This document shows positions 28,338 to 62,157 of a DNA stretch of 64,000 bases, in pieces. Every line of letters starts with the position of its first letter. The stretch's first letter is position 1. A program made the translations under genes and the position numbers. Location: assembly GCF_003704095.1 (NCBI RefSeq), contig NW_020845038.1, positions 62,001 to 126,000 on the forward strand, in the 5' to 3' direction. Source of the stretch: Pocillopora damicornis. Its lineage: Eukaryota. The notes under the pieces were generated by a model, which had not been told where the DNA came from, did not search any database, and worked only from the letters and a program-made list of their open reading frames with translations.

Positions 28338-31300
28338 ATGGAGAAGGCTTCCGAAAGCAAAACAGATGGAGAAACCGAAGGAAAATTTTCAGCTCGGCCG
28401 TACCAAGTGGAACTTCTAGAGCGGGCGAAGGAAAGGAACACCATCGTATGTCTGGGCACAGGAACTGGTAAAACGTTTATAAGTGTCATGCTCATAAAAG
28501 AACTCGCTCATGAAGTAAGAGGAAACTATAAAGACGGCGGGCGAAGAACTTTCTTCCTTGTAAATACAGGTACCTTCATATGTTTTGTCTTTATGAGATC
28601 AGCTTTACCTCGGGGGAGTGGGTACGATATCTCAGCGCGGGTCGGGCCGGGGTTGCGAAGATGGGTAGTAGCGGTCCTCGCATACGTACAAATACAATTC
28701 AATGGAAATAGAAGAAATGATCGTAGATCTTTCCTTATTTTTGCCTGATTATGCCTTATTGGAACCTTTGATGCCAGAAACTAAAATATAAGATCAAGAA
28801 TGTGGTTTAAATTTTGATTTCCTTAAGTCGAAAGGAGCTTGAGGATTGTAGACGAAATCAACTCCCTTTGTAAATAACATGTCCTTCCTTTTTTCACAGT
28901 TCCACTAGCTAGCCAACAAGCAAAAGCGATCGCTAAACATACAGACTTAGAAGTCAGGCATTACGTTGGAGAGATGGGTGTAGATTTCTGGGACAAGCCC
29001 ACTTGGGAAAAAGAGTTCAATACAAGCAACGTTCTGGTCATGACAGCTCAAATATTCCTCGACCTTCTGTTGCATAGCTACATACTTCTCTCGCAAGTGA
29101 ATCTCTTGATCTTTGATGAATGCCACCATGCCAAGAAGAATGATCCTTACAGACAGATAATGCAGTGCTTCAGCGATTGCCCACAGCGCCAATTACCCAA
29201 AGTTATGGGTTTAACTGCCTCGATAGTAAATGGAAAGGTAAAACCTTATAAAATTGAATCGGAGATCCAAGAGCTGGAACGCACATTAAGATCTACATGC
29301 GAAACAAGTCAAGACGAAGATGTTGAAAAATATGCTGCTAAACCCGAAGAACTGGTCCTTGTTTACAGGAGCCAGAGCACTGATGAAAATGTAAACATTT
29401 TGATCCAAATCCTGTCAGATGTCTTAAAACCAGGAATTGGTTTTCTCCGCGACTGTCGGGTGTCCAAAATTGACGAGAATGCACACTGGTACGCGAAGTT
29501 CGCTCTGAGAGAGTGTAAGGAGACATTGGATGAACTGGGCCCTTGGGCTGCTTTTAAAGTAGCAGAATACCTAATTAAGGATCTGGGTATGGTACTGTTT
29601 CAGTTTTAAGGGGAACTGACGTAACTGTGCCCAAAGTTTAAGTCAAGTTTTCGAAAAATCATAATACGGTCAACGCGAACCAAATATCATAAATATTATC
29701 CAAAAAGAAGGGAAAAATTTCATGACTCCATTTCCAAAAATTTTGGTTTTATAGGTTTTTTTAAAATTTTGCTTTAACTCTTTACACCCTAACATCAGTA
29801 TACATATTCTTCATACTGTTCTCTACACATTTCTTAAGGTGCTGACAAGGAGAATTTGCTTAACAATCAAGAGCTTCTTTAGTTGGTGATCATTTCCTTT
29901 AATCTTGATACCCTAATGGTTGATTGATTCTTGGGTGATCCTGTTAGGAGAAGTTAGATGCAGTCACTCAGAGAGTTGAAGAGTTTAGCCTACATGACAG
30001 ATATTGACTTAATGTTTATTAGAAATAATAATACCTCATAATACCAAATTATTCCAATTCAAGCAAAATTAACCTGGGATTGGATAAAAATGCCTTTGTT
30101 GGCATCTTTTGATCAACTGGAGTGGAATGCACTTATAAACCGGAATCTTTTCTTCTAGACAGAGCATGCAAGGTTCAAAGCAGCAAACAAGGGCGATTGT
30201 TTTGCGAGTTTAGTGCCACCCAGCTGCGTCAATTGCGGGGCATTTACTGTAATTTTACTGAAAGTGATGGGTCTGAGGACAGTGGACATTGTTACTTCAT
30301 GCCTAAACTTCAAACACTTCTGAGTGTTTTCAGGGAGTTTGCTAACTCACAGCATGGTAAGGAATACTCTGCTGACTGCTTTATTTATGGAACTGATATT
30401 TCATTTCCTCAGTGAAAACCAAAACAGAAGATTAGCAAAGTGGATATTTTTGCACTTCTTATCACAATTTGACATTTTCTTTTCTAAGATCTCTCCTGAT
30501 TGTGTGCCAAACCTTCTTAAAATTTTAACCATGAGACTTTGTGTTAAATTTCGAAATATCCACTGCCCATGATTTTTCTTTCCTCTCAGCTCCTGTATAT
30601 TTTGAATTGTAATGTTATTGCGAGGAGAAATTTGTTTTGGTTTGCTCTTAGCAGTGAGAAGTGAAATGGAATAATATTAGTGGTACCAGTAATAAAAATA
30701 TTGATGATATTGACAGGGCCAAATTGATTACAATCATTATAGTAGGAAATTTAACAACAATAAAAATGATAATGATGATAACAACAACGATAATAATCTC
30801 TCAGGGGGAGATCAATATTCAGTAGCCATCTCCTCATTCCACCAAGAAATGTGAGGAACAACATTGTGGTTGAGGAACAAATCACGGGGACAAAAAGATT
30901 AAACATGGCTACATCTGCTACCCAGCTTCACCTTAAGGAAGATTTAGCCAATTGTTAAAAGTAATATTAATAAGAATAATCTTTTAGGTTTACTTTTGTT
31001 TTTTTTGTCAATCCATACACGCTAAATAACCAGCTTTAAAATTGGCTCTTTCTTGAAATTTGTTTCAAGAGTGATTTTGAATGTTACTCTGCAAAACAGC
31101 TTGGTGATCCTCAGTTTGGTTATTTTGCAGCATCTGAAGAGGACAAGACCCTCTGTGCCATTGTGTTTGTTGAAAGACGATACACAGCACTGATCCTCAG
31201 CAAACAGCTTAACAAGGCAGCCGAACTAGATCATGAGCTCTCATTCATCAAAAGTGACTTTGTGATTGGTCATGGCACAGGTGCAAGGGTTAGCTACTCC

Positions 31301-32890
31301 AGTAACACAGAGATGAATTTTAAGAAACAGGAGGAAGTGCTGCGCAAGTTCAGAAATGACAAGAAAAGACATGAATTCAATGTGCTGATAGCCACCTCTG
31401 TTGTTGAGGAGGGGTTAGATATTCCCAAGTGCAATGTTGTCTGCAGGTTTGATTTCCCAAAGAATTACCGCTCCTATGTACAGTCAAAGGGCAGAGCTCG
31501 TGCCAAAGGTTCCAAGTACTACATGCTGGTGGATGAAAAAGAGCAAGTGGAAAAAGTGAATGAATTGGAGGTACATAATTATTTTAAAGTTATAAAGTCA
31601 GTAATAATCCATACCTACTCTGGTGATTGTCATTGATAATGTTTAGCTGAGGATACAGAGCACCAGACTGCTGTGTGGGAGATAGAAGGTTCTAACCCCA
31701 GACTGCCGACCAACACTCAGGGTCCTAGAATAACGGAAGACTGTGCTGCCTTTGTTAAGACATCTGCAAACAGTTAGACATTCTGGTCAACTTGTATAGG
31801 GATAGTAAGCCACAAGCCCCATCTTCTGTTTCTCCTCTCTACTGGTTAGCAGGGGACGTTAAAGAACCCATGCATTTCTTGCAAAGAATAGGGAACATAG
31901 ATGTCATTGTTATAGTCTGGCCTTTAGATTTTTTACACAGGCTGCCTTTTAAAGCAGCTTTAAGCTGAACTGTGAAAGCTGGTTTAAATATCATAAATAA
32001 ATTCATAACCTGGTTGAATTATTGTGAGGAATGTTAATTATTCTTCTTCTTAATGTTCATGACTTATTCCCTAGATGTTGCGTGCTATTGAGGAAATCTT
32101 GTTGGAAAGATGCCATGATCGGCTGGAGCCATCAGTGGAGGAGTGTAATGAGTCAGTAGACACAGATTTACTGCCACCGTACATACCAGTAAATGGAAAG
32201 GGAGCAAGAGTAACAATGACCAGTAGTGTTGCTCTACTTTCAAAGTAAGTGCAAAGAATTTATTAACTTTGAATTGTGTTGTAGTTCTAAATTTGAGATA
32301 ATTGGTTGACTTGTGTATTGTTAAGTAATGTGGTTGTAAAAAGGGAAGATGTGCTATATATGGGGTAACATACTTGGGCACTGATTGTGAAAAGGGGTGA
32401 TTTCTATTAACTATGAGTATTACTGTAAAGCTGGCTGTTTGCTTCCCTACAAACCTCAAAATTGCTCGTATTACCTCTTATCTTTCACTGAAATCACTTG
32501 GAATTCATGAAAATTCAGCAGTTAAAAGGACAAGTCTACCAGTTTGATAATTATTTTTACCTGTCACATTGAAAATAAGGGAGTACACTGCCTCTTTAAA
32601 AGCTCTTACACCACATCTACATAAAGTTATGCTCTTTTAAATTTTAACTCAGGGGTGTAGAATATTCTTATACTTAATATGGAGATGACCAATTACTTAA
32701 AATTACAAACTTTATAAAACTAGAATTATAACAATATTTCTACTTTTGTCTTTTCAGGTACTGTTCAAAGCTCCCAGGTGACCGGTTTACGCAGCCCAAG
32801 CCAGTTTACAAGGTTGAGGAAATTGGGAAATATCTTTACAGGTGTAAACTAACACTCCCAATAAACTGTCAACTATGTGATGATATAATA
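28338..32890 (+). CDS. DICER: Dicer-like endoribonuclease, fragment A (exons 1-6: DExD/H helicase and start of DUF283); runs into an assembly gap
   Basis: Exons 28338-28569, 28900-29586, 30159-30356, 31131-31570, 32075-32244, 32758-32890. Motifs [69 protein letters not shown]; 34022-34180 matches intron 7 of copy E. Confidence 0.93.
31640..32000 (+). mobile_element. tRNA-derived SINE in Dicer intron 4, shared by all three paralogues (also ~39000-39345 and ~55160-55600)
   Basis: tagctgagg..agagcaccagact…gggag…ggttc.a.ccccagac head and body similar to 33018-33428; present at the same position in A, B and E. Confidence 0.6.
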
Positions 32891-33017
32891 GTGAGTTTAG
32901 AGGACTTTTATTTTTTTTAAACTAAGACATAAAATTGTTATTATGGAAATTTGCCTATTTCCACTGTCATTATCATTGGCTATTGATAATATTTATCTGC
33001 CTTCTGATTGGTTACGT

Positions 33018-33428
33018 AACCGCCTCCCGGTTAGCTCAATTGGTTAGAGTGGTGGACTGTGGAGTGGGAGGTCGAAGGTTTGAGCCCGGCCGAACCAACA
33101 CTTAAGGTCTTGAAATAAATGAGGAGAATGTGCTACCTTTCTATAATGTCAAGAAATGGATAGACATTCTAGTCTTCTCAGATAAGGACGAATAAACTGT
33201 AGGTCCCGTCTCCTACCTCTATTAATTAGTCAATTTGGTCAGGCAGGGGACATTAAAGAACCCACTCACGAGATTACTGTGATGTGGCTGGCCAGTTTAC
33301 TGGGAATTGGGGGGGAGAGGGGTCTGCCCTTGTCATTGTTAACGCGGGATCCACTGTTATTGGCTAAAGCTGTAGTGGTCTCCATGCCTGAGATAATTGG
33401 ACGAAGCTAAATAAATTAAATTACAAAA
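33018..33428 (+). mobile_element. tRNA-derived SINE inserted only in copy A intron 6
   Basis: A-box (ggttagctcaattggttagag), B-box-like ggtttgagccc, A-rich tail, TTACGT repeated on both sides; copies B and E show the empty site ctgattggttattggtact. Confidence 0.75.
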
Positions 33429-34280
33429 TTACGTTATTGGTACTTTGGTTGTGATTTTGTGTCTCTCAATTCAACATTGTTCTAATTCTCTGTGCTAAGT
33501 TTCAAGCAGTTTCTTAACTCTTGGAAATTAACCCTGTAACTCTCCAAAATTCTAAAAATAACTCTCCTGACTAACTGCTGTACATTTCCTTGTAAATTGG
33601 AGAGGACAATATGGTGTCACATTAAGACAACACCCTAACGCTGATGAACTTATATATTCNNNNNNNNNNNNNNNNNNNNNNNNNNNNNNNNNNNNNNNNN
33701 NNNNNNNNNNNNNNNNNNNNNNNNNNNNNNNNNNNNNNNNNNNNNNNNNNNNNNNNNNNNNNNNNNNNNNNNNNNNNNNNNNNNNNNNNNNNNNNNNNNN
33801 NNNNNNNNNNNNNNNNNNNNNNNNNNNNNNNNNNNNNNNNNNNNNNNNNNNNNNNNNNNNNNNNNNNNNNNNNNNNNNNNNNNNNNNNNNNNNNNNNNNN
33901 NNNNNNNNNNNNNNNNNNNNNNNNNNNNNNNNNNNNNNNNNNNNNNNNNNNNNNNNNNNNNNNNNNNNNNNNNNNNNNNNNNNNNNNNNNNNNNNNNNNN
34001 NNNNNNNNNNNNNNNNNNNNNTTCAAGTTTGGGTATGCTGTTGATTTACCAATTTTTTTGAGCTTTAACAAACACGTCATTCGCTTCTAAAACGCCGTGA
34101 CTTAGTGATCATGAAACCATGAAACCAGTGTTCGAATCCTCTCGTTGAACTCAAGTTTCACCTTCGCTTCACGCTCTTGANNNNNNNNNNNNNNNNNNNN
34201 NNNNNNNNNNNNNNNNNNNNNNNNNNNNNNNNNNNNNNNNNNNNNNNNNNNNNNNNNNNNNNNNNNNNNNNNNNNNNNNN

Positions 34281-37200
34281 TGTGGTGCGATTCGGTGGTA
34301 CGTCGCCAAACTGACATCCCGTAGGACACCAAACCTCGCGAGCCAACTGCGTGTTCTGGAGATACTCGCCCAGAGATTTCTTGGCCGCTGCTCGGTACAA
34401 CGCTAAATTACTAACCTGGTTTGTCCTACGTCGGGTCAGCTTGCCTTCGTCTTTATCGCTGTATGTGCAGAAGAGATGAATAGACACGGCCAGCTTCAGA
34501 AATGAGTCCCCTAGCATCTCCAGCCTCTCCAGATTAAATGCATCTCCGCTGTGGGTGGTGGTAATAGCTTGAAGAACGAGAAAGGAGTCGGGGTGGTTAG
34601 CAGATGGTGGACTGTGAGGGAACATCGACCTGATGCCGGGGAAAAGTGCATCATCTTTTTCAGGGTCCCAAGTATCGTCTTCAACCTTCATGGGCGCTTC
34701 TCTTGAGCCCTCTTCAGCTCCAATGGGAGGAAGGGTTGATTCATCTGTTGTGTTGCGTACACCAGTAACCATGGCCTTGAGATCGTCAACGAGAAGGAGG
34801 GAGGTGACACGCTGAAGAATAGATGGTAGAATCTGAGACACGCTGAGAAGGGAAGCGCGAATGGGAATCTGGTCACACAACTCTGGAACAAGACAAATCA
34901 CATCTCGCTTGTTTTTTGTTCCTCGTTTTTGGTCCACAAGAAAATTCACTCTACCGGAGAGCTCTTTCACTTCAACAAGAGGTTGATGCTTGTTCGCAAT
35001 GCATCCCCTTTCTCCGTAATTAAGGCGAAAATATTCTTCATAAGTGTTGCCCTGCGACTTTTCTGGGAACGGAGACATCGGAGTCAAATCGCCACGAACA
35101 TTCAAAACAGCGTACTTTTGGGGAGATTCAACGTAGTTTTTTGTCACCGCTGAGTCTACGACGATGGGCTGATTTCCACGGCTTTGTTTGGGTGCACGCG
35201 AAAGTTCTTCTCTCATGCAATCAAAGTCAATACTCCTTCCTGAAGCCTTCAACATAACAATGAAGTAACCATCCACACTTCCTGGTGTGAATTCCACAGG
35301 AGAGCGTAGAACGTGACTGAAGAGAAAGAGATGAAACTTGCGAAGAATGTCCAACTCTTGTTTAGTGATGTTTACACGCAAAGAAGATCTGTGACACTGC
35401 AAGGATACCGTGACTTCGCCATAGTTAGGATACAGTTTGAACGATCGTATCTGAAGAGTGAAAAAATTTCATTGTAAAATGTAGGGCAACATCTGCAGTC
35501 AAGCCCGAATTCAGGTCAATATTTGGAGCAAGTCTTATCGTTTAAGGAATAGAACCTCATAACTGTTATTTTACGAAGGGCCGACTGTTGCTAAGGTTTA
35601 CAGGTCAAAAAAACTGACTGCCTGTTACTACGCACTCTCAGTGTCCTGCAAAGTAAGAATCGTTCCTATTTTAAACTGCGAGGTCCTTGATAGTGTGTGT
35701 GGTAAAAGTGGTATATGTTTTAATCGGGGACCTTTAGTAGCTAGTGAGAATTCAAAGTAAAACAACCAAACTGCCTAAAGCGCGGGAAAATGCAGACGAT
35801 CAAGTCGTGATTGGTTTTAGTTTTGCAGCTGATCGGCTGAAAGAGAGGTTCAAGTTTTCTGGACCAATCACAGAGCGACACTGGATTGAAAATTGCTCAA
35901 TAGAGTTACTTGACAACAAATGAAATATTAATAATCAAGTACTAACCCAAGGAACTCTTTTCGTTGTCAGCATTCCAAACGTGCAAGTTTTATCGAGGAA
36001 CAGTGGCTTACTAACGACAAACTCTTGTGGCTGAGTAAGTTTAGTGACTTGTATGGTGATGGTCGTGAGGAACTGGGGCTGACCATCCTGTACCAAGCTG
36101 CTGACAAATACTTCAGGAACCTGGGCAAGAACAAAACATCAGGGCTCAGTTGTGTAAAGGGCCGATAACGCTATCCAACGGATAAATCGCTATCCAGCCG
36201 ATAAGTGATAGCAAAACATACTGCGTTATCCACCGGATAGAGTTTTATCCGGTGGATAGTGGTATCCAACCTCAGAACAACTGGGGCCAGGTAAAGAAGG
36301 TGTAAATATTTTGCCAAGAGCATGAACTGAAGGAGAAACTTGCCCTCAACGTAGGGATTCGAGCATGGGTTTCATGGTCGAACGCTCTGCCAACGGCGCT
36401 ACAGAAAATAAGCTGTATACTCAGTCATACGAAATCTTTGGGGTAATCTGGGGTGCACCTTTGTTTTGCGTTGCGAAGTTAGGCGTGCAAATTATTTGAA
36501 TTTAATGCAAATTTGTGGGTGCGAGATAAGGATCTAATAAAAAACCTCCAAACAATACCCCCAGCGCCCAATTGTTCGAAGGCCGATTAGCGCTAACCCG
36601 GGGTTACTGAGTTTTAATCTGGGTTTCTTTAGTCCCTTCTTCAAAGGCCTATTTCAGATAATTTCTTCAATTCTTTTTAGAACACCCAAGCATCAAATTG
36701 TAGGCAAAAATAAATATACTGAATATGCCTTTAAAGCTTTCAGATTTGAGGTCAGATTTCACGCTAACCCTGGGTTATCTTAACCTAGCTTTGAACAACC
36801 TGGCCCGGATGTTTGCCTCTCTTATTCCGCTTGGTGTTTCACTTTAGTTTCAACCCGAGGTAAATCTGCGGCTATGATGGTCAACTTAACCTATGTTGGG
36901 CTTCTCGTTGGCTGACAAGGGTTGCTTGGGAAATTTAATTTTGCTGTGACGTATTTTTATTCATTGGAAAAGTGGCAGAGTCTTCCCTAAATTGAAACAA
37001 ACTAGCAAACAGAAGTCTCAAGTTCCTTTTAAGTTTAATGATTTAGAGAAACCAAAAATGTTAATAAATTTCAACTAAAGAACCAAGTCTGCATTTTAAC
37101 CCTGGTCTGTAGTCTTCAGTCTGCATTTTACCCTCAGTCTGCATTTTAACATTGGTTTCACACTGACTGTAATTTGATGAGAATGGGGCCAATAAAAATT

Positions 37201-40200
37201 ATTCAGGGAGAGGCAGACCCTCTAGCTGACTGACCAAATTTATGAATAGACAGTGCATTGTGAGCAACATTGTACTGAAATGTAAGTTAACAGTTTAATA
37301 TGTAAGTGTAAGTCACAGGCCACATTTGTGACATTCAACTGCTTACCTTTCTCATATACTGTCGTCTTCTCTTCTTTGTTCCAGCTTTTGGTTTCTTTCC
37401 GCCAAACTCAGCTGCTGCTTCTTCTTCTTCCAGACCACTTTCCTCGTCAGATAAAGTCTGCTTTGGTAACAGGTCATCATCAAGTTCACCAATCTTGTGA
37501 AGCAGCTCACAGGCTCTGAGCGCAGCGACCATCTTGGCTTGGCTCTTACTTGGCATTGGTTCACCCTGATGAAATGCAGAGAGAGATGATTCTGATGTGA
37601 GCGATTTACATGTAATTTCTCCTTGTAATTCCAATATCTTGCATTGCAAACAGGTTATGAGAACCTATAAGCTTATCACCTTTAAGGTTTTGTCTTGATA
37701 TAAAACCATATTCTCCTCTCCAATTTACAAGGAAATGTATGGCAGTTTGTAGAGAGAATCTTACAGAATCTTGGAGAGTTACTGGGGTAATTCCCAAGAG
37801 CTAACAAACAATTCTTGTGCTAAATTACAATGCTTTTCCTTGAAACTTGGTTCAAAGAATGAGAGCAGTTTTGAATTGAGAGTCACAAAACCAAAACCAG
37901 AGTACCAATAACCAATCAGAAGACAGATAACCATTATCATTAGCCAATGAGAATGACAGTGAAAATAAGCATATTTCTGTGGTAGGTTTTTTATTTCTTT
38001 ATTTAAAAAAAGAGAAGTCCTCCAAACTCACTATTATATCTTCATGTATTGGACAGTTTCTTGGAAGTGTTAGTTTACACTTGTAACCATCTTTCCCAAT
38101 TTCTTTGACCTTGTAAACTGGCTTGGGCCGAGTAAACTGGTCTCCTGGAAGCTTTGAACAGTACCTGAAATGACAAAAGTAGAAATATTGATATAATTCT
38201 AGGTTTATAAAGTTTATAATAAGTAATTAATCTTCTCTATATTAAATATAAGACCCTGAGTTAAAATTTAAAAGAGCATAACTTTTATGTTGATGTGGTG
38301 TAAGAGCTTTTAAAGAGGCAGTGTAATCCCTTATTTTGAACTCAACAGGTACAAAAAAAGTCATCAAACAGGTAGACTTATCCTTTTACCTGCAGAAGTT
38401 TCACAAATTTCAAGTGATTTTTGGTGAAAAATAAGAGGTAATACAAGCAGTAAATTGTACCAGTTGCCTCCAGAAAAGGAGAACAATGGAGAGCTGTCAA
38501 TTATTAATCAGTTTGTTGTTGCTACGGGGTGATCTTGAGTTTTGTGGGGAAGCAAGCTGGCTTTACAGCAATACTCATGGTAAATACAAATCACCCCTTT
38601 CACAATAGGAGCCCAAGTTTGTTACCCATAAATGGCACATCTTCCTTTTTTAGACTTACATTACTCAACAATAAACAACTCAACCAATACCGGTAATCTT
38701 AAATCTAAAACCACCTCAGAATTGGAAGTTAATAAATTCCTTGCACTTACTTTGAAAGTAGAGAAACACTACTGCTCATAGTTACTCTAGCTCCCTTGCC
38801 ATTTACTGGTATGTACGGCAGCAAGAAATCTGTGTCTACTGATTCATTACACTCCTCCACTGATGGCTCCAATCGATCATGGCATCTTTCCAACAAGATT
38901 TCCTCAATTGCACGCAACATCTAGGATATAAGTCATTTTTAAAAAGCTTCCTAAGAGTATACATTTGTTACTGTCATTCACTCAGGTTACTGATATGTGT
39001 TTATTTGCAATATTCAAACCAACTTTCCCAGCTCAGCTTAAAGCTGGTTTAAATGGCAGCCTGTATAAACAATCTAAAAGGCCAGACTATGACTGACATC
39101 TACATTCCCTATTCTTTGCAAGAAATGCATGGTTTCCTTAATGTCCCCTGCCAATCATTACAGAGGAGATGAGGCTTACAGCTTGTTATCCTTTTTCGAG
39201 TTGACTAGAATGTCTAACTATTTGCAGATGTCTTAGCAAAGGCAGCACACTTCTCAGTTATTCTAAGACCCTAAGTGTTGGTTCAGTCTGGGGCTTGAAC
39301 CCTCAACCTCCCACACCACAGTCTGGTGCTCTACAACCTCTGCTAAACAATATCAATGACAGTCACCAAAATACAGGATAGGTATGGATTTTTACTGACT
39401 TTATTACATTAAAAAATGTACCTCCAATTCATTCTCTTTTTCCACTTGCTCTTTTTCATCCACCAGCATGTAGTACTTGGAACCCTTGGCACGAGCTCTG
39501 CCCTTTGACTGTACATAGGAGCGGTAATTCTTTGGGAAATCAAACCTGCAGACAACATTGCACTTGGGAATATCTAATCCCTCCTCAACAACAGAGGTGG
39601 CTATCAGCACATTGAATTCATGTCTTTTCTTGTCATTTCGGAACTTGCGCAGCACTTCCTCCTGTTTCTTAAAATTCATCTCTGCATTACTGGAGTAGTT
39701 AACCTTTGCACCTGTGCCATGACCAATCACAAAGTTACTTTTGATGAATGAGAGCTCCTGATCTAGTTTGGCAGCCATGTTAAGCTGTTTACTGAGGATC
39801 ATTGCTGTGTATCGTCTTTCAACAAACACAATGGCACAGAGGGTCTTGTCCTCTTCAGATGCTGCAAAATAACCAAACTGGGGATCACCAAGCTGTTTTG
39901 CAGAGTGGCATTCAAAAACCACTCTTGCACATTGAATTCAGAAAACAGATTTCAAGAAAGATCCAATTTAAAAGCTTGCTTTTGAGTGTGTAGGGATTAA
40001 CAAAAACACAAATATAAACCTACAAGATCATTATTATTTATATCATTATTAACAATTGGCTAAATCTTCCTTAAGGTGAAGCTGGGTAGCATATGTAGCC
40101 ATGTTTGATCCTTCTGCCCTTGTGATTGTTCTTCAACTGAAAGCCATTTCTTGATTGAATGAGGAGATGGTTACAGAAGTTCAAAATGTCCTCTAAATAT

Positions 40201-51680: not shown

Positions 51681-51780
51681 NNNNNNNNNNNNNNNNNNNN
51701 NNNNNNNNNNNNNNNNNNNNNNNNNNNNNNNNNNNNNNNNNNNNNNNNNNNNNNNNNNNNNNNNNNNNNNNNNNNNNNNN

Positions 51781-52886
51781 ATGCAACACTCAAATGATAG
51801 CGGACAAGTCCATAGCTGACAGCATCGAAGGACTTATCGGAGCGTATCTAATATCCTGTGGTTATCTTGGTGCGTTGCGATTTCTGAAGTTTCTGGGGCT
51901 AAAAGTTTTACCTGAAGTTGACGTCAACGTCGACATTGATCCGCGGGCGGAGAATAGTAAATCGGGTTGCTATGCCAGATTTTGGCCGGATCAGACAAAA
52001 ATAACAGCAGCGCAAGGTAAAGGAGATATGGTTTTCCGCCTCACTTCTGGCCTGGAAAACTTTGAAAACGAATCAATCTCGTACAATTTCCAGCACAAGT
52101 TGTATTTAGTAGAAGCGCTAACCCACGCGTCCTACCACGAAAACCGTGTCACGCCAAGTTACGAAAGACTCGAGTTCCTCGGCGATGCTCTGTTGGACTT
52201 TTTGGTCACGCAACATTTGTACTTCCGTCACGTCAACTTGTCACCTGGAGAACTGACCGATATACGACAGGCCTTGGTGAATAATAACATCTTTGCCACC
52301 CTTGCCGTAGAACACAGTTACCACAAGTATCTGAAGCATATGTCTCCAAAGTGGTTCCAAACGGTGAAGAACTTTGTTGACAGAGTAGAAGATGAGGCAG
52401 AAGAGAGGAAAGATAATCAGCTTCAAACGGTAGGGTGAACTTTATTCTTTAATCCTTTACATCAGTTTTCTTATTCTCCATTCTGTCTTCCATACATTTC
52501 CTGAGGTGCTGACAAGGAGAATTTGTTGAACGATCAAGAGCTTCTTTAGTTGGTGATGGAGACGTTTCCTTTACTCTCGTGACCTTAACATGTGATTCAG
52601 GGCTGATATCGTAAGGAGAAATTAGGTGCTAATTACTCTCATGGGCCAGAGGGTTTAATGAATATTTTCTCCAGTTGATTTATAAGGTATGTTTCTTCGT
52701 TAACAATTATTTGGCAGGTCACCGCTGACCCATTTATTATCGTGTCTAAAGAAGAAGAAGGAATTGAGGCGCCTAAAGTTCTTGGTGACATCTTTGAATC
52801 AGTAGCAGGCGCGATATTTTTGGACAGCGGTATGGATTTGACTAAAACCTGGGGTGTGTACTACCGCATGATGAAACCCTACATCG
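51781..52886 (+). CDS. DICER: Dicer-like endoribonuclease, fragment D (end of RNase IIIa, RNase IIIb) between gaps; probably the continuation of copy B
   Basis: Exon parts 51781-52429 and 52718-52886; [33 protein letters not shown]; distinct from C and E ([13 protein letters not shown] linker). Confidence 0.9.
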
Positions 52887-54653
52887 GTAAGTTGGCCATC
52901 GCCACCCGCGAGGGTGGATCAACCTCCCATCCTTAAAAGCCTTATCAGCGGAGAGCTCCGAAGTTTTTTTCGCAATAAGCAAGGAAAGGAGTGAGAATGA
53001 GTCAGAGAAAGTACATTCAGCATGGAGTTTAAGAATTCAACCCTAGCTATCAACTCCAAAGTGTAAAGGAAGGCNNNNNNNNNNNNNNNNNNNNNNNNNN
53101 NNNNNNNNNNNNNNNNNNNNNNNNNNNNNNNNNNNNNNNNNNNNNNNNNNNNNNNNNNNNNNNNNNNNNNNNNNAAATCTTTATAATTACCCTGACATCA
53201 CTATGCATATTCTCCATACTGTTCTCTATATATTTCCTAAGGTTCTGATAAGGAGAATTTGTTGAACAATCAACAGCTTCTTTAGTTGTTGATCATTTTC
53301 TATATTCTTGTTACCTTAATGGTTGATTCAGGCTGGCGTAATATTTTAAGAAGGAATTGGATGCTAGTCACTCTGAGGGTCAAAGAGNNNNNNNNNNNNN
53401 NNNNNNNNNNNNNNNNNNNNNNNNNNNNNNNNNNNNNNNNNNNNNNNNNNNNNNNNNNNNNNNNNNNNNNNNNNNNNNNNNNNNNNNNNNNNNNNNNNNN
53501 NNNNNNNNNNNNNNNNNNNNNNNNNNNNNNNNNNNNNNNNNNNNNNNNNNNNNNNNNNNNNNNNNNNNNNNNNNNNNNNNNNNNNNNNNNNNNNNNNNNN
53601 NNNNNNNNNNNNNNNNNNNNNNNNNNNNNNNNNNNNNNNNNNNNNNNNNNNNNNNNNNNNNNNNNNNNNNNNNNNNNNNNNNNNNNNNNNNNNNNNNNNN
53701 NNNNNNNNNNNNNNNNNNNNNNNNNNNNNNNNNNNNNNNNNNNNNNNNNNNNNNNNNNNNNNNNNNNNNNNNNNNNNNNNNNNNNNNNNNNNNNNNNNNN
53801 NNNNNNNNNNNNNNNNNNNNNNNNNNNNNNNNNNNNNNNNNNNNNNNNNNNNNNNNNNNNNNNNNNNNNNNNNNNNNNNNNNNNNNNNNNNNNNNNNNNN
53901 NNNNNNNNNNNNNNNAGTTTGACCCTTTCACTTCTAAGATCTCTCCTGATTGTGTGCCAAACCTTCCTAAAAAATTTCAACCCTGAGAATCTGTGTTAAA
54001 TTTCAAAACATTGCCTGCCTCATTATTTTTCTCTTTAATCAGCTCCTTCATATTTTGAATTGTAATGCTATTGTGAAGAGAAACTTGTTTTGGTTTGCTC
54101 TTAACACTAAAAGGTGAAATGGAATCCTCTATCATAGTAACAGTAATAACATCAATAACAATATTTGATGGCACTAATATTAATGATAGTGGTGCTAATA
54201 ATAAAAATATTGATGATAATAATAGTACCATAATGATTAAAATCATTACAGTAGGAAATTTAACAACAATAAAAATGATAACGATGATAACAACACCTAT
54301 AATAATGTCTCAGGAGGAGATCAATATTTAGAGGACATCTTAAACTTCTATAGCTATCTCCTCATTCAATCAAGAAATGGCTTTTGGTTGAAGAACAAAT
54401 CTTAAGAGTGAAAAGATCAAACATGGTTACACCTGCTACCCAGCTTGACCCTGAGGAAGATTTAGCCAACTGTTAAAAATAACCATGTGCGAGGTTAATT
54501 TTTGTTTTTCTGTTAATCCCTACATGCTCAAAAGTCTGAGCTCTTGAATTGGATCTTCCTTGAAATCTGTTTTCTGAATTCAATGTGCAAGAGTGATTTT
54601 TGGATGCCACTCTGCAAAACAGCTGGGTGATCCTCAGTTTGCTTATTTTGCAG

Positions 54654-57600
54654 CATCTGAAGAGGAGAAGACCCTCTGTGCCATTGTCTTTGTTGAAAAA
54701 CGATACACAGCACTGATCCTCAGCAAACAGCTTAACATGGCTGCCAAACTAGATCAGGAGCTCTCATTCATCAAAAGTGACTTTGTGATTGGTCACGGCA
54801 CAGGTGCAAGGGTTAGCTACTCCAGTAACACAGAGATGAATTTTAAGAAACAGGAGGAAGTGCTGCGCAAGTTCAGAAATGACAAGAAAAGACATGAATT
54901 CAATGTGCTGATAGCCATCTCTGTTGTTGAGGAGGGATTAGATATTCCCAAGTGTAATGTTGTCTGCAGGTTTGATTTCCCAAAGAATTATTGCTCCTAT
55001 GTACAGTCAAAGGGCAGAGCTCGTGCCAAAGGTTCCAAGTACTACATGCTGGTGGATGAAAAGGAGCAAGTGGAAAAAGTGAATGAATTGGAGGTACATA
55101 TTTTAAAGTAATAAAGTCAGTAATAATCCATACCTACTCTGGTGATTGTCATTGATAATGTTTAGCTGAGGATGCAGAGCACCAGACTGCTGTGTGGGAG
55201 ATAGAGGGTTCAAGCCCCAGACTGCTTACCGACTCTCAGGGTCTTAGAATAGCTAAGGACTGTGCTGCCTTTGCTATGATGTCTGCAAATGGTTAGACAT
55301 TCTACTCTACTCGTAGAAGGATCATAAGCCATGAGCCCCATCTTCTGCATCTCCTCTCTACTGGTTAGCAGGGGATGTTGATGAACCCATGCATTTCTCA
55401 CAAAGAATAGGGAACATATATGTTCGATTCCTCATGGGGACTCAGAATTTTTTCTTTGTCCCACACTTGTGACAAAGCAAAAAAACATCTTCTCTATAGA
55501 TGTCATTGTTATAGTCTGGCCTTTTGATTTTTTACCAGGCTGCCTTTTAAAGCAGCTTCAAGCTGAACTGGGAAAGCTAATTTAAATATCATAAATAAAT
55601 ACATAACCTGGTGGAATTACTGTAAGGAATGTTAATTATTCTTCTTCTTAATGTTCATGACTTATTCCCTAGATGTTGCGTGCTATTGAGGAAATCTTGT
55701 TGGAAAGATGCCATGATCGGCTGGAGCCAACTGTGGAGGAGTGTAATGAGTCAGTAGACACAGATTTATTGCCACCGTACATACCAGTAAATGGAAAGGG
55801 AGCTAGAGTAACTATGAGCAGTAGTGTTGCTCTACTTTCAAAGTAAGTGCAAAGAATTTATTAACTTTGAATTGTGATGAAAATTTGAGATGATTGGTTG
55901 ACTTGTGTATCGTTAAGTAATGTGGTTGTAAAAAGGGAAGATTTGCCTTTTACGGGTAACACACTGGGGCTCCTACTGTGAAAAGGGGTGATTTGTATTT
56001 ATTATAAGTATTGCTGTAAAGCTGACTGTTTGCTTCCCCACAAAACTCAAGATCACCTAATAGCAACAACAAACTGATTAATAATTGATAGCTCTTCAGT
56101 ATTCTCCTTTTCTGGAGGCAACTAGTAAAATTTACTGCTTGTATTACCTCTTATTTTTCACTGAAATCACTTGGAATTCATGAAAATTCAGGACTAGGTA
56201 AAAGGATAAGTCTACCAGTTTGATAATTATTTTTACCTGTCAAGTTGAAATAAGGGAGTACACTGCCTCTTTTAAAGCTCTTACACCACATCGAAATAAA
56301 AGTTATGCTCTTTTAAATTTTTAACTTAGGGTGTAGAATATTCTTATACTTAATATGGAGAAGACTTATTACTTATAACAAACTTTATAAAACTAGAATT
56401 ATAACAATATTTCTACCTTTGTCTTGTCAGGTACTGTTCAAAGCTTCCAGGAGACCGGTTTACTCAGCCTAAGCCAGTTTACAAGGTTGAGGAAATTAGG
56501 AAATATCTGTACAGGTGTAAACTAACACTCCCAATAAACTGTCAACCACGTGAAGATATAATAGTGAGTTTGGAGGACTTCTCTTTTTTTAAATAAAGAA
56601 ATAAAAACCTTACCATAGAAATTTGCCTATTTTCACTGTCATTCTCATCTGGGCCATTGACAATGTTTATCTGTCTTCTGATTGGTTATTGGTACTTTGG
56701 TTTTGTTGTGGTGACTCTCAAATAAAACTGCTCTCATTCTTTGAACCAAGTTTCAGGGAAAAGCACTTTACTTCAAAAGGAAAATTGTTTGTTAGCTCTT
56801 GGGAATTAACCCTGTAACTCTCCATGATTCTAAAAGTAATTCTCCCAACTCACTACCATACATTTCCTTGTAAATTGGAGAGGAGAATATGGTGTTATAT
56901 CAAGACAACACTTTAAAGCTGATGAACTTATATGTTCTCATAGCCTGTTGGCTATGTAACATATTGGAATTACAAGGAGAAATTACATACTAATCGCTTA
57001 TTAGAGAGTCATCTCTGTCTGCATTTCAACAGAGTGAACCAATGCCGAGTAAGAAGCAAGCCAAGATGGCGGCTGCGCTCAAAGCCTGTGAAAGGCTTCA
57101 CACGATTGGCGAGCTTGATGATAACCTGTTACCAAAGCAGACTTTATCTGACGAGGAAAGTGATTTGGAAGAAGAAGCAGCAGCTGAGTCTGACGGAAAA
57201 AACCAAAAGCTGGAACAAAGAAGAGAAGACGACGGTACAAGAGAAAGGTCAGCAGTTGAATTTCACAATTTTGGCCTGTGACTTACTCATTAAACTATTA
57301 ACTTACATATCTCAGTAGAATGTCCCAGGCAATGTATAAGTATGAATTTGGGTGTCAGCTAGAGGGTCTGCCGCTCCTTGAGTAACAATAATCGGCCCCA
57401 TAATAATCGGTCAAATTATAGCCAACTCAGTGATCAAACGTCGGAATTACCAACTTTTTTTAGCTTTAACAAACAAGTTATTCGCTTCTAAAACGCCGTG
57501 ACTTAGTGATCATGAAACCATGAAATCAGTGTTCGAATCCTCACGTTGAACTCAAGCTTTTCCTTCGCTTCACGCTCTTGACAAATATTTACACCTTCTT

Positions 57601-60600
57601 TACCTAATGTTTTGTTCTTTTCCAGGTTCCTGAAGTATTTGTCAGCAGCTTGGTACAGGATTGTCAGCTCCAGTTCCTCACGACCATCACCATACAAGTC
57701 ACTAAACTTACTCAGCCACAAGAGTTTGTCATTAGTGAGCGACTGTTCCTCGATAAAACTTGTACGTTTGGAATGCTGACAACGAAAAGAGTTCCTTGGG
57801 TTAGTACTTGATTATTAATATTTCATGCGTTATCAGGTAACCGAATTCTGTGGAGCAATTTTCAATCCAGTGTCGCTCTGTGATTGGTCCAGAAAGCTTG
57901 CACCTTTCTATCAGCCAATCAGCTGCAAACTAAAACCAATCACCAATTTGGTTGTTTTTACTTTCAGTTCCCGCAATTCTCATTGGTTCCTAAAGGTCCA
58001 CGATTGCAGCATATAGCACTTTTACCACACACACTGTAGATGTTGCCCTACATCTTACAATGCAATTTTTTCACTCTTCAGATTCGATCGTTCAAACTCT
58101 ATCCTAACTATGGCGAAATCACAGTATCCTTGCAGTGTCACAGATCTCCTTTGCCGCGTGTAAAAATCACTAAACAAGAGTTGGACATTATTCGCGAGTT
58201 TCATCTCTTTCTCTTCAGCCACGTTCTACGCTATCCCGTGGAATTCACACCAGGAAGCGTAGATGGTTACTTCATTGTTATGTTGAAGGCTTCAGGAAGG
58301 AGTATTGACTTTGATTACATGAGAGAGGAGCTTTCGCGCGCATCCAAACAAAGCAATGGAAATCAGCGCATCGTCGTGGACGCAGTAGTAACAAAGAACT
58401 ACGTTGAATCTCCACAAAAGTACGCTGTTTTGAATGTTCGTGACGATCTGACTCCGATGTCTTCGTTCCCGGAAAAGTCGCAGGGCAACACTTACGAAGA
58501 ATATTTTCGCCTTAAATACAGAGAAAAGGGATGCATTGCGAACAAGAATCAACCTCTCGTTGAAGTGAAAGAGTTCTCCCCTAGAGTGAATTTTCTAGTG
58601 GACCGAAAACTAGGAACAAAAAACAGGCGAGATGTGATTTGTCTTGTTCCAGAGTTGTGTGACCAGAATCCCATTCGCGCTTCTCTTCTCAGCGTGTCTC
58701 AAATTCTACCATCTGTTCTTCAGCGTGTCACCTCCCTCCTCCTTGTTGCCGATCTCAAGGCCATGGTTGCCGGTGTACGCGACACAACAGATGAATCAAG
58801 TCTCCCTCCTATTGGAGCAGAAGAGGGCTCGAGAGAGGCGCCCATGGAGGTAGAAGACGATGCTTTGGACCCTGAAGAAGACGATGCGCTTTTCTCCGAC
58901 ATCAGGTCGATGTTCCATTACAGTCCACCATCTGCAGACCACCCCGGCTCCTCTCTCGTTCTTCAAGCTATTACCACCACCCACAGCGGAGATGCGTTTA
59001 ATCTGGAGAGGCTTGAGATGCTGGGGGACTCATTTCTGAAGCTGGCCGTGTCCATTCATCTCTTCTGCACATACAAGGATAAAGACGAAGGCAAGCTGAC
59101 CCAGCGGAAGAAAAACCAGATTAGTAATTTGGCGTTGTACGGAGCAGCGGCCAAGAAATCTCTGGGCGAGTATCTCCAGAGCACGCAGTTGGCTCGCGAC
59201 ATGTGGTGTCCTACGGGATGTCAGTTTGGCGACGTACTACCGAATCGCACCACAGGTAGCCCAGCCATGGAAGTTGACAGCGAGGACACGGTCGAGGCAA
59301 TGGAAGTTGACGAGACCTTAGAGAGCGGAAAGAAGACAAAACTTACTGCTACAGAGCATGCGCGCCAGAAATGCAACACGCAAATGATAGCGGACAAGTC
59401 CATAGCTGACAGCATCGAAGGACTGATCGGAGCGTATCTAATAGACTGTGGTTATCTTGGTGCATTGCGATTTATGAAGTTTCTGGGGCTAAAAGTTTTA
59501 CCTGAAGTTGAAGCAAAGGACGGCAATGATTTGCAGGCGGAGAATAACAAATCGGGTTGTTATGCCAGATTTTGGCCGGATCAGACAAAAATAACAGCAG
59601 CGCAAGGTAAAGGAGATATGGTTTTCCGCCTCACTTCTGGCCTGGAAAACTTTGAAAACGAATCAATCTCGTACAATTTCCAACAAAAGTTGCATTTGGT
59701 AGAGGCGCTAACTCACGCGTCCTACCACGAAAACCGTGTCACGCCAAGTTACGAAAGACTCGAGTTTCTCGGTGATGCTCTGTTGGACTTTTTGGTCACG
59801 CAACATTTGTACTTCCGTCACGTCAACTTGTCACCAGGGGAACTGACCGATATACGACAGGCCTTGGTGAACAATAACATCTTTGCCACCCTTGCCGTAG
59901 AACACAGTTACCACAAGTATCTGAAGCATATGTCTCCAAAGTGGTTCCAAACGGTGAAGAGCTTTGTTGACAGAGTGGAAGACGAGGCAGAAGAGAGGAA
60001 AGATAATCAGCTTCAAACGGTAGGGTGAACTTTGTTTTACAATCCTTTACATCAGTTTTCTTATTCTCCATTCTGTCCTCCATACATTTTCTAAGGTGCT
60101 GATATGGAGAATTTGTTTAACAATCAAGAGGCTCTTTCGTTGGTGATGGAGACGTTTCCTTTATTCTCGTGACCTTAACATGTGATTTAGGGCCGATATT
60201 GAAAGGAGAAATTAGGTGCTAATCACTCTCATGGGCCATGGGTTACCGCCCTTAAACAAGGCGTTGAGGCTTTATGAATATCTTCTCCAGTTGATTTATA
60301 AGGAGTATTTCTTTGGTAACACTTATTTGGCAGGTCACCGCTGACCCATTTATTATCGTGTCTGAAGAGGAAGAAGAAGGAATCGAGGCGCCTAAAGTTC
60401 TTGGTGACATCTTCGAGTCAGTAGCAGGCGCGATATTTTTGGACAGCGGTATGGATTTGTCTAAAACCTGGGATGTGTACTACCGCATGATGAAACCCTA
60501 CATCGGTAAGTTGGCCATCGCCACCAGCGAGGGTGGATCACCCTCCAATCCAGGGAAACCACCCCCCCCCCCCGGGGAAAAGCCTTATCAGTAGGAAGCT

Positions 60601-62157
60601 CCGAGGTCTTTCTCGCAATAAGCTGGAAAAGGAGTGAGAACGAGTTAGAGAGAGTATACTCAGCATGGCGTTAAAGGATTTAATCCTAGCGATCAACTCC
60701 AAAGTGTGAAGGAAAGCCATTGAATAACGAACCTAGAGAAAAATTTTACAAATATTGATTGATATGAAGTTTTCGATTCAGATTATTAATCAGTAAGCAT
60801 ATCGCGAAATCCCATCAGACATGTTTACGAGGAACCTGGAACCTGGTGAAAAACACTAGAAAGATTGATTGATTTACGTTTTCGATTTAGATGAATACTC
60901 GGTGAACATACCGCGAAATCCCATCAGAACTGTCTACGAGGAAGACGAGGACGCTGACTTTGGGTGAGTGTACAGTTCAAGGTTAACATTTTTTATGGTT
61001 GGTTGACTCTCTCCGCATACGTCTCTTACTAACTGCACCAAAGTGTAAATAAATTTAGAGAGTAATAGAGTGCATTTTTTCCAAGGACAACATTTCTGAA
61101 CAGCGGAAGCAGTCTTTAAAGAAATTGTGGCCGAGTGCGGCAGATCTTTCCGAAAACATGGACCTGTGAATGTGTATAGAGCTAAAATTACCTCAAAATG
61201 TCGGAAAATAAAATTGTTCGGCGTCAACGAAGAGCGCAAAAATAGTGTGGCGCAACGTAAAACTTGTCAACATTTTTCTCTCGAAATAGGGAGATATTGA
61301 GAAAGATTACACAGACCTGCGGAAGTAGCGCAGTTTAATCTACCAAATTGCATAATCCTACTCTTACATAAAAGTTTAATCGTCCTTTCAAGATCTACAT
61401 ACCAGTCAGTAAAGCATTGAAAAGTGCGAATGACAACTTGCACATGAAAGTGATCGAATGTGCTTCACGTAACGCTAAGCGTTAATTGCTTTTTCAGGCG
61501 CGTCTTTTGGCGTGCGCTTCTTTCATCTCACACGCATTTATCGAGCCAGATAGGCCTTGTCCGCCATTAACTATCAAACAATGAGTTCTCCTGATAACGC
61601 AGATTTTCGTGTTTTTTTCCAACATCATCTCTCGAAATAGGGAGATATTTAGAAAGATTACACAGAACTGTGGTAGTGGCGCGGTTTCATTTACCAAATT
61701 GCATGATCTTACCCCTACAAAAAAGTTCACTCGTCTGCTCATGATCTACACACCAGTCAGTAAAGCATTGAAAAGCGCTAATGACAACTCGCGCACAAAA
61801 GTGGCCGCATGTGGTTTACGTAACGCCAAGCGTTACTTGCTTTTTCAGGGGCGTCTTCTGGCTTGCGTTTCTTTCATCTCACACGCATTTACCGAATCAG
61901 AGTGGCCTTGTCTGCCAATTGGCTATCAAACAATGGGTTCCTGATCACGCAGATTTTCATGTTTTTTTTTGTTTTGTTTTGTTTTCTTCAGGAAAGCGAA
62001 GACCCTTGATGATGGTAAGATCCAGTGCACTCTGAAAGTGGACTGGGGAGAGTACAATGGAAAGGGACCGAACATGAAGATTGCTAAAGCTACAGCTGCC
62101 AAGCTTGCTATTGAAGGACTGAAAAAGAAATACGCTGCGGTGTACGAGGAAGAGTAA
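54654..62157 (+). CDS. DICER: Dicer-like endoribonuclease, copy E (exons 4-12; 5' exons lost in gaps), with a 1-nt frameshift in exon 7; possible pseudogene
   Basis: Exons 54654-55093, 55673-55842, 56431-56563, 57033-57247, 57626-57799, 58082-60019, 60334-60505, 60891-60963, 61992-62157. PAZ, both RNase III signatures and dsRBD intact; exon 7 is 215 nt versus 219 nt in copy B. Confidence 0.9.
61275..61975. repeat. Two diverged ~350-bp tandem units in the last intron of copy E
   Basis: tctctcgaaatagggagatatt..gaaagattacacaga…accagtcagtaaagcattgaaaag…ctatcaaacaatg occurs twice (from ~61277 and ~61628); the equivalent intron is 358 nt in fragment C versus 1028 nt here. Confidence 0.85.

Follow-up and report, generated by a model that had tools for sequence, protein, structure and literature searches.

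Dicer fragments and gene model

Five Dicer fragments, designated A, B, C, D and E, were recognized by self-BLAST, open reading frames (ORFs) and Pfam domains in the window, i.e., the whole 64,000-nucleotide stretch of DNA analyzed here. They share 76-94% nucleotide identity. Judged from the sequence, they probably (roughly 80%) come from three full-length, paralogous Dicer genes of 12 exons each, arranged in tandem and head to tail in the genome of a stony coral. Gene 1 consists of A, a small island (G1) and C; gene 2 of B and D; and gene 3 of a second island (D2) and E. Each gene spans ~10 kb and encodes a product of ~1,520-1,533 aa. The five-piece, mixed-orientation appearance of the locus is an assembly artefact of gaps and one flipped block. 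It arises because positions 34281-51680, a single contig, are inverted in the scaffold, sitting upside down between two gaps, and because repeat-rich parts were lost in gaps; the true order is head to tail. The features are given below, with ctg65910 denoting a 130-kb contig of a relative.

26644-28337, plus strand: region upstream of gene 1, duplicated along with the gene; its counterpart upstream of gene 2, at 46385-44657 on the opposite strand, is 76-87% identical
28338-33659, plus strand: fragment A, 5' part of gene 1, ending at an N gap; exons 1-6 at 28338-28569, 28900-29586, 30159-30356, 31131-31570, 32075-32244 and 32758-32890 (GT-AG)
33660-34021: N gap, collinear inside gene 1, hiding exon 7 of A
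34022-34180, plus strand: G1, island between two gaps; piece of intron 7 of gene 1, collinear with A
34181-34280: N gap at a false junction, where intron 7 of gene 1 (plus) meets the cut end of exon 9 of gene 2 (minus)
34281-44656, minus strand: fragment B, 5' part of gene 2, with exons 1-8 complete and exon 9 represented by its first 1,170 nt; exons 1-5 at 44656-44425, 42080-41394, 40860-40696, 39861-39422 and 38920-38751, exons 6-9 at 38164-38032, 37565-37347, 36120-35947 and 35450-34281 (exon 9 in part) (GT-AG)
42170-44179, minus strand: insertion in intron 1 of gene 2, also found in the B-like gene of ctg65910 (95-96%)
44657-49060, minus strand: spacer between the gene 1 stop and the gene 2 start, free of N and collinear with ctg65910
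49061-51680, minus strand: fragment C, 3' part of gene 1, from within exon 9 to exon 12 including the stop; exons 9-12 at 51680-50436 (exon 9, cut by the gap), 50170-49999, 49657-49585 and 49226-49061 (stop)
51681-51780: N gap at a false junction, where cut exon 9 pieces of two genes stand head to head
51781-53074, plus strand: fragment D, 3' part of gene 2, with part of exon 9 (last 649 nt, 51781-52429), exon 10 (52718-52886) and part of intron 10; open frame
53075-53174: N gap in which the 3' end of gene 2, the spacer and exons 1 and 2 of gene 3 must lie
53175-53387, plus strand: D2, island between gaps; a short interspersed repeat of intron 2, belonging to gene 3
53388-53915: N gap, collinear inside gene 3, hiding exon 3 of E
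53916-62157, plus strand: fragment E, gene 3, with exons 1-3 in gaps; exons 4-8 at 54654-55093, 55673-55842, 56431-56563, 57033-57247 and 57626-57799, exons 9-12 at 58082-60019, 60334-60505, 60891-60963 and 61992-62157
57192-57204, plus strand: A-run within exon 7 of E that lacks one base relative to B and to two independent assemblies, shifting the frame

The gene model comprises 12 exons with every splice site GT-AG. All-frame ORF BLAST could not be used to define these exons, because introns are conserved between copies as strongly as exons; exons were searched singly, and the joined coding sequence served only for frame checks and dN/dS. An earlier note, made from the sequence alone, had counted three distinct versions of helicase exon 4 (A, B, E), and likewise three for the beginning of RNase IIIa (B, C, E) and for RNase IIIb (C, D, E). 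It had also reported identical intron positions, a product of ~1,530 aa, intact helicase motifs in A and B, and all visible RNase III acidic residues. The versions and intron positions were recovered by self-BLAST, ORFs and Pfam, and the summed exons (4,602 nt) give ~1,533 aa. The motifs GTGTGKT, DECH, TAS and QSKGRAR are indeed intact in A and B, and all four acidic pairs are present wherever visible.

The layout is that of a canonical animal Dicer: a DExD/H helicase (Hel1, Hel2i, Hel2) with motifs I, II, III, V and VI, DUF283, platform-PAZ, two RNase III domains and a dsRBD. Exons 1-7 match the Pfam families ResIII/DEAD, Dicer_PBD (Hel2i/partner-binding), Helicase_C and Dicer_dimer (DUF283), with A encoding Hel1, the Hel2i/partner-binding domain, Hel2 and the start of the Dicer dimerization domain. 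Exon 9, a single exon of 1,938 nt, encodes the platform through most of RNase IIIb. It matches Dicer_platform (E 9.6e-9), PAZ (E 2e-14) and, twice, Ribonuclease_3, i.e., two RNase III domains per chain, and its PDB matches include a platform-PAZ fragment of human Dicer. C and E carry the ERLE.LGD and D..E pairs of both IIIa and IIIb, as do B and D wherever visible. The last exon of C matches Dicer_dsRBD (E 1.2e-6), and in both C and E the open frame continues to the stop. Judged from its predicted domains, among which none of those expected is missing, the family is a Dicer, a eukaryotic class 3 RNase III.

Linkage of the fragments and gene number

The N gaps were left unfilled, and contigs from other samples served only to test fragment linkage. 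For gene 1, A has an open frame of 620 aa with all splice sites GT-AG, and C, encoding RNase IIIa, RNase IIIb and the dsRBD, has an open frame of 551 aa. On ctg65910, a single gene contains both A-type exons 3-6 (98.5-100%) and C-type exons 9-12 (98.3-99.4%). The G1 island is 92.8% identical to E at 57444-57581, on the same strand, and is found on Tara scaffold L003 (98.1%) immediately upstream of a C-type exon 9. Since the spacer at 44657-49060 contains no N, the 3' end of gene 1 adjoins the 5' end of gene 2 in the same orientation.

For gene 2, the open frame of B, 1,130 aa long, covers the helicase through the beginning of RNase IIIa; a TGA taken for a lesion inside B was dismissed, as it falls in the intron preceding exon 9. 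Between the end of B and the start of D, ~117 nt are missing (39 codons, by the length of E), and the frames are compatible. On Tara scaffold L007, exons and introns of B type (98-99.8%) continue into D (98-99.7%), and DNA contigs from two samples extend beyond 53074 into a homologue of the next part of the gene. Assignment of B and D to different genes, considered at the protein level where D-type ORFs are 86-89% like B in the overlap, was withdrawn after nucleotide chunk mapping, L007 being 98-99.8% B-type across introns with one divergent patch in exon 9. The link of B to D is that of L007, a scaffold from another sample rather than part of this assembly, and the identity of L007 to B drops to 88.5% in that patch of 400 nt. 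For gene 3, D2 is 86.6% identical to B at 41211-41017 and 81.4% to A at 29786-29983, and lies at the collinear distance from the first base of E.

The number of genes that can be reconstructed in the window is exactly three, and at least three are present. Three versions per exon and the linkage in independent assemblies uphold the earlier claim of at least three paralogues rather than one collapsed gene. Fragment D could have a fourth gene as its owner here, and more than three genes in this individual are possible, although we consider this doubtful; the fourth, hidden in the gaps, would be a gene of the type called X, a separate owner of D, or a copy behind E. In ctg65910 and on Tara scaffold L009, gene 1 is directly followed by gene X, whose 5' half is 88-95% similar to A, B and E and whose 3' half is of D type. 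Further exon 9 types (P0004/P0005, P0008) had no match above 95% among the copies of the window, the upstream module recurs past the right end of the window and there stops at an N gap (L013 4251-5817), and a 2026 paper counted five Dicer proteins in Pocillopora tuahiniensis (PMC13343488, Table 1). However, searches of the whole 234-Mb assembly for family copies outside the window yielded window fragments only. The region downstream of gene 1 joins that upstream of B without N, so that X is absent from that place here, and the additional exon 9 types may come from other species among the samples.

Reading frames, expression and orientation

All frames are open across the copies with the sole exception of the A-run in exon 7 of E, which the earlier note did not mention. 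Its missing base shifts the frame relative to B, to the E-type Tara scaffold and to ctg65910, and gene 3 could accordingly be a pseudogene or yield truncated products in this individual, leaving a functional set of two genes. We regard this as unlikely. The frameshift comes down to one difference in homopolymer length, in a scaffold built from short reads, the other exons of E are all open, and the frame downstream of the shift is conserved and open through exons 8-12. Moreover, dN/dS of E against the other copies is 0.21-0.35, its exon 3/4 junction is found in RNA contigs, and the E-type copy of another sample is in frame.

Between copies, dS is 0.1-0.2 and dN/dS 0.18-0.35. Ratios of ~0.2-0.35 imply constraint and indicate that the copies are under purifying selection. 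Sliding dN/dS of A against B gave no window with dN above dS. Positive selection on a divergent Hel2i stretch was rejected because dS is also high there (0.5-0.8), as in older sequence. The copies are transcribed and spliced, the RNA evidence coming from the C, D and E parts of genes 1-3. RNA contigs from two studies match the introns of C (50171-50435, 49658-49998 and 49227-49584) to the base, and D is covered by RNA contigs. The fit of one RNA contig to E stops at 54653, and ahead of this point the contig has the final part of exon 3, so that exons 3 and 4 are spliced in RNA at 54653/54654. For 56000-62000, a fraction of 0.20-0.26 of sampled words was found in each of six RNA runs. The copies are also compact, as the earlier note had said. 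Copy-specific transposable element insertions had also been proposed. The insertions are real: intron 1 measures 2,344 nt in B versus 330 in A, intron 7 measures 1,226 nt in B versus 378 in E, and intron 11 measures 1,028 nt in E versus 358 in C. The 171-aa ORF of the insertion in intron 1 of B matched no Pfam family.

Taken as given, the scaffold would show a real inversion, with convergent, truncated Dicer fragments left by rearrangement, which we consider very improbable. Both breakpoints fall on N gaps within exon 9 or intron 7, and the missing halves were found joined as expected in three independent assemblies. An RNA contig leaves 51680 into 137 letters that are absent from the window and are not the reverse complement of D, and every fragment has an open frame under constraint. 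The notion of uncollapsed haplotypes of one or two loci is contradicted: although the assembly is fragmented, with many gaps precisely in the Dicer region, and high heterozygosity is possible in marine invertebrates, three versions of each of three exons are too many for two alleles, the 6-24% divergence reaches through introns with dS as given above, C-, D- and E-specific contigs (at least 95%) occur in each of two independent DNA samples (sequencing runs used as contigs), ctg65910 holds three tandem Dicer genes without a gap, the end of gene 1 is physically joined to the start of gene 2 in the window, and B and C overlap by 480 nt at 94%. The version number, dS, the two samples and the relative's contig all favor paralogues over haplotypes, as had been argued before. 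The locus is mis-scaffolded, with a flipped contig and five gaps, and Dicer counts or annotations taken from this assembly are wrong unless corrected. This agrees with a warning in the literature about the mishandling of tandem duplicates by short-read coral assemblies.

Family type and evolution of the array

By similarity, the family appears to be of the Dicer-1 or ancestral type and not an orthologue of arthropod Dcr-2. In PDB comparisons, the RNase III/PAZ exon 9 scores 296 bits against fly Dcr-1, 292 against human Dicer and 168 against Dcr-2. Helicase exon 2 scores 216 bits against AncD1D2 and 114 against Dcr-2. AncD1D2 (PDB 9mw6), an ancestral animal Dicer helicase that has been resurrected, is the solved structure that exon 2 matches best (E 4e-63), which fits a slowly evolving, ancestral-type coral helicase. 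AncD1D2 is a reconstruction and no natural protein (PMC10159624), and likeness to it is no sign that the coral helicases hydrolyze ATP. In a Dicer tree the coral family is set apart by a long stem, and no grouping with Dcr-2 has support. The coral family shares with Drosophila Dicer-2 a full helicase with motifs I, II, III and VI and, as its proposed role, long dsRNA processing, but it is no closer to Dicer-2, as the lower Dcr-2 bit scores in the helicase and RNase III parts attest. The likeness to insect Dcr-2 drawn in the earlier note thus remains an analogy, Dcr-1, human Dicer and AncD1D2 all outscoring Dcr-2. The ATPase motifs of A and B are intact, but such motifs are no sign of competence; human Dicer keeps its own yet does not hydrolyze ATP (PMC10159624).

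A phylogeny against cnidarian Dicer1 and Dicer2 had also been proposed. In a tree that included Nematostella 'Dicer 2' (AGW15596.1), the genome's other Dicer (C4129) pairs with that protein with a support of 100*. As C4129 is the only other Dicer of the genome, the array would, by elimination, be the counterpart of Nematostella Dicer1 (NveDcr1). This protein (171 kDa, PMC12768352) has a full DExD/H helicase and a size similar to the coral ~1,533 aa; it produces miRNA and siRNA, is induced by poly(I:C)/dsRNA, and is enriched in immune cells (PMC8476169, PMC12768352). NveDcr1 is a single gene in Nematostella, whereas the coral has a tandem array of three. Exon-by-exon searches for protein homologues returned only nameless single-exon ORF fragments for the coral family, and an ESM Atlas search only generic RNase III clusters. 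By analogy with known Dicers, each copy would bind a dsRNA end in its platform-PAZ and cut ~21-23 nt away through an intramolecular RNase IIIa/IIIb dimer. Triplication would permit division of labor or a higher inducible dose, and an siRNA/antiviral role of the array is conceivable.

The types of the window form one clade (100/100) apart from three copies on another genome's contig, in keeping with the lineage-specific amplification proposed earlier. Copies cluster by genome, contig-mates in other genomes pairing together, so that duplication or gene conversion is specific to lineages and has recurred among corals. The copies resemble one another in a mosaic pattern, and ctg65910 carries a D-type 3' half on a different 5' half (gene X) and a B-like 5' half on an E-type 3' half. 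Because of this mosaic and the different combination of halves in a related genome, the array probably evolves through tandem duplication together with gene conversion and unequal crossing-over. More speculatively, and with little confidence on our part, it might resemble an immune-receptor cluster, in which helicase (5') and PAZ-RNase III (3') halves are swapped through such conversion and crossing-over, numbers and hybrids vary among individuals or species within the coral genus and are maintained by pressure from viruses or transposons, and the miRNA and antiviral siRNA tasks of the one Nematostella Dicer1 are split.

About one coral gene in three belongs to a tandem array; such arrays show an enrichment of immune functions, and short-read assemblies often miss or scramble them (PMC10236652). 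The Dicer locus matches this description; the text and 17 supplements of that paper do not mention Dicer. Multiple Dicer genes in early-diverging animals were reported by de Jong et al. 2009, as cited in PMC3840309. Like these and the plant DCL families, the coral has more than two Dicers per genome, with division of labor expected, but those paralogues are old and dispersed, whereas those of the coral are young (dS 0.1-0.2), lie side by side and continue to exchange sequence. A literature search turned up no account of such an array in corals, only a count table of Dicer proteins (PMC13343488) and, for Stylophora, one Dicer and one extra ORF (PMC3962355).

Cnidarians are the main outgroup for how the antiviral RNAi and miRNA pathways of animals separated. 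Three young, constrained and expressed copies of apparent Dicer1 type in one coral would constitute a natural experiment in subfunctionalization, and other corals have apparently duplicated the same gene independently. This opens the prospect of a dedicated antiviral Dicer that may have arisen independently of arthropod Dcr-2.

Organization of the Dicer region in the scaffold

The assembly comprises 234 Mb in 4,393 contigs, and five of the seven N runs in the window lie within the Dicer region. Stop-to-stop ORFs of the window contained all Dicer domains in Pfam searches (ResIII/DEAD, Dicer_PBD, Helicase_C, Dicer_dimer, Dicer_platform, PAZ, two Ribonuclease_3 and Dicer_dsRBD). Self-comparison gave long matches on both strands between 26.6 and 64 kb at 72-94% identity, and once the pieces were oriented these matches formed five collinear fragments. 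Two small islands were also found.

Pieces of the Dicer region (fragments from self-comparison)
26.6-33.66 kb, + strand: fragment A, including flank
46.4-34.28 kb, - strand: fragment B, including flank
51.68-46.5 kb, - strand: fragment C, including flank
51.78-53.07 kb, + strand: fragment D
53.92-64 kb, + strand: fragment E, including flank
34022-34180: island G1, with a gap on either side
53175-53387: island D2, with a gap on either side

With the block 34281-51680 turned, the fragments would form three head-to-tail genes, A+G1+C (gene 1), B+D (gene 2) and D2+E (gene 3), an arrangement that is settled by linkage in independent assemblies together with the N-free passage from C to B. On ctg65910, a 130-kb contig of ENA assembly ERZ25067899, A-type exons 3-6 (98.5-100%) and C-type exons 9-12 (98.3-99.4%) occur in a single gene. 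Tara Pacific scaffolds match at 96-100% identity; one carries G1 (98%) directly 5' of a C-type exon 9, and a second is B-type over exons 4-8 and their introns (98-99.8%) and then D-type (98-99.7%). In the window, the downstream flank of C continues into the upstream flank of B with no N between them. Some 39 codons are absent between B and D, whose frames are compatible.

The gaps, which were left unfilled, can be read on this arrangement. Those at 33660-34021 and 53388-53915 are collinear breaks, the former inside gene 1 and concealing exon 7 (506 nt expected against 362 N), the latter inside gene 3 and concealing exon 3 (484 nt expected against 528 N). The sequence is discontinuous across gaps 34181-34280 and 51681-51780: at the first, opposite-strand pieces of different genes adjoin, and at the second, two cut halves of exon 9 from different genes meet head to head on opposite strands. 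Gap 53075-53174 must conceal several kilobases, namely exons 11-12 of gene 2, the first two exons of gene 3 and, between them, a spacer.

Other features of the window are as follows.

8365-9405, + strand: 347-aa intronless ORF encoding a SOCS box (E 3e-7) and, after it, a protein kinase domain (E 3e-22)
1-8000 and 14227-14795, - strand: MYST-type histone acetyltransferase exons, with matches to MOZ_SAS and Tudor-knot, and an ORF whose sequence resembles the ribosome-biogenesis factor PNO1 (no Pfam match on the piece tested)
2970-3164, 18523-18703, 29779-29983, 41013-41211, 50288-50419, 52446-52639, 53183-53387 and 60036-60242: copies of a ~190-nt short interspersed repeat

The repeat occurs in introns 2 and 9 of every Dicer copy as well as elsewhere in the window, and contig depth, 100 to 1,000 times higher on the repeat than on the flanking sequence, marks it as a high-copy element of the genome.

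Gene model and reading frames

The exon model was built by aligning the copies with one another and with distant full-length Dicers. It has 12 exons of 232, 687, 198 (165 in B), 440, 170, 133, 219, 174, 1,938, 172, 73 and 166 nt, with AG/GT at every border and, as the earlier note had described, the same intron positions in all copies. The coding length sums to 4,602 nt, or about 1,533 aa, in agreement with its estimate of ~1,530 aa. RNA-contig joints from two studies coincide exactly with the modelled borders of C introns 9, 10 and 11, one RNA contig matches E from 54653 onward and is preceded by the end of exon 3, and RNA runs left hardly anything in intron bins. Most of the excess length of E intron 11 over that of C is a tandem duplication of ~340 nt (61277-61618 and 61628-61968, 85% identity).

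Open frames span 620 aa in A, 1,130 aa in B, 551 aa in C up to the stop, and 272 aa in D. In E, exons 4-7 and exons 8-12 are open, and the one defect is an A-run within exon 7 (57192-57204) that lacks one base relative to B, to an E-type scaffold from a different sample and to a third assembly. As assembled, this shifts the frame, and the frame 3' of the shift is still conserved. An ATG in intron 8 of E (58040-58081) opens a stop-free frame into exon 9, giving a 662-aa ORF (58040-60025), and the counterpart of this stretch in B (35492-35451) has a TGA. Combined with the frameshift, this ATG could, in a purely speculative reading, give a gene 3 product that lacks the helicase. The helicase motifs and RNase III acidic residues previously reported as intact were recovered throughout the visible sequence, namely motifs I, II, III, V and VI of the helicase and, for each RNase III domain, both acidic pairs.

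Paralogy and variability of the array

The earlier claim that the copies are paralogues stands, and haplotypes do not explain them: each of three exons exists in three versions, which two alleles cannot supply. Fragments B and C overlap by 480 nt at 94%, divergence extends to introns as well as exons, and dS among copies is 0.06-0.20, with dN/dS mostly 0.18-0.35. Contigs specific to C, D and E were found in each of two unrelated DNA samples (at least 95% identity), and the related contig ctg65910 carries three tandem Dicer genes, beyond which its sequence corresponds to that downstream of the array in the window. On sequence grounds, the copies are paralogues. The whole assembly outside the window held no further copies of the tandem family, the only Dicer-related sequences elsewhere being a distant Dicer on contig C4129 and an RNase III fragment on C4335. 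On ctg65910, rhodopsin-type GPCR ORFs (7tm_1, E 1e-24; L001 15204-15773, - strand, and L017 6584-7612, + strand) lie between the second and third Dicer genes of that contig and directly downstream of its array.

In an exon-9 protein tree (IQ-TREE), all types of the window's lineage form one clade (100/100, stem 0.21), three copies on one 679-kb contig of another genome form a separate clade (100/99), and in two further genomes contig-sharing pairs are sisters (100/100); a wider tree was built with FastTree. Because copies cluster by genome or contig, either recurrent lineage-specific duplication or within-genome homogenisation of paralogues is suggested. The dS between A and B varies along the gene from 0.04 to 0.8, Tara scaffolds contain type-switching patches, and on ctg65910 one Dicer gene, gene X, joins a new 5' half to a D-type 3' half, while in a hybrid gene the 5' half is B-like and the 3' half E-type. 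These patterns point to sequence exchange between copies, and the array is accordingly variable in structure between genomes.

The sequenced individual may carry a fourth copy, as exon-9 types without a match among the window copies and an additional upstream module beyond the window, cut by a gap, would favor. This module, a second copy of the one preceding gene 1, lies to the right of the window (L013, C1673:126001-136000, at 4251-5717), is 82% identical both to window 25600-26566 and to the upstream region of B (45989-45456), and stops at an N gap (5718-5817). No Dicer exon was found within 4 kb after it, and the module could represent either a remnant or the margin of a concealed fourth copy.

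Affinity of the tandem Dicers and significance

Exons were searched one at a time, and these single-exon queries returned no named full-length member of the tandem family. The helicase exon scored highest with AncD1D2, the resurrected helicase of an ancestral animal Dicer (216 bits, against 146 for human Dicer and 114 for fly Dcr-2), and the platform-to-RNase III exon scored 296 bits with fly Dcr-1, 292 with human Dicer and 168 with Dcr-2. The proposed likeness to insect Dcr-2 is thus not borne out for either exon. In the second Dicer of the assembly (C4129:194738-203540), PAZ and the two RNase III domains lie in one open exon of 868 aa, and the helicase-like part is weak (23% identity to other Dicers). 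Since this Dicer groups with Nematostella 'Dicer 2', we infer by elimination that the tandem family corresponds to Nematostella Dicer1. The latter retains its helicase (PMC3840309). It takes part in the miRNA pathway, poly(I:C) and dsRNA induce it, and immune cells are enriched for it (PMC8476169, PMC12768352). The intact ATPase motifs of the coral copies do not prove activity, because human Dicer carries such motifs and, according to PMC10159624, does not hydrolyze ATP.

Tandem duplicates are abundant in corals, above all among immune genes, and are mishandled by short-read assemblies (PMC10236652); neither that paper nor the supplements searched mention Dicer. Older work gives one or two Dicers per coral (PMC3840309, PMC3962355), and five Dicer hits in Pocillopora tuahiniensis, four in an Acropora and four in a Porites were listed without comment in 2026 (PMC13343488). 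The Dicer array is a new, well-resolved case of a known type of event, and the gene affected is of particular importance to the question of how antiviral RNAi evolved.
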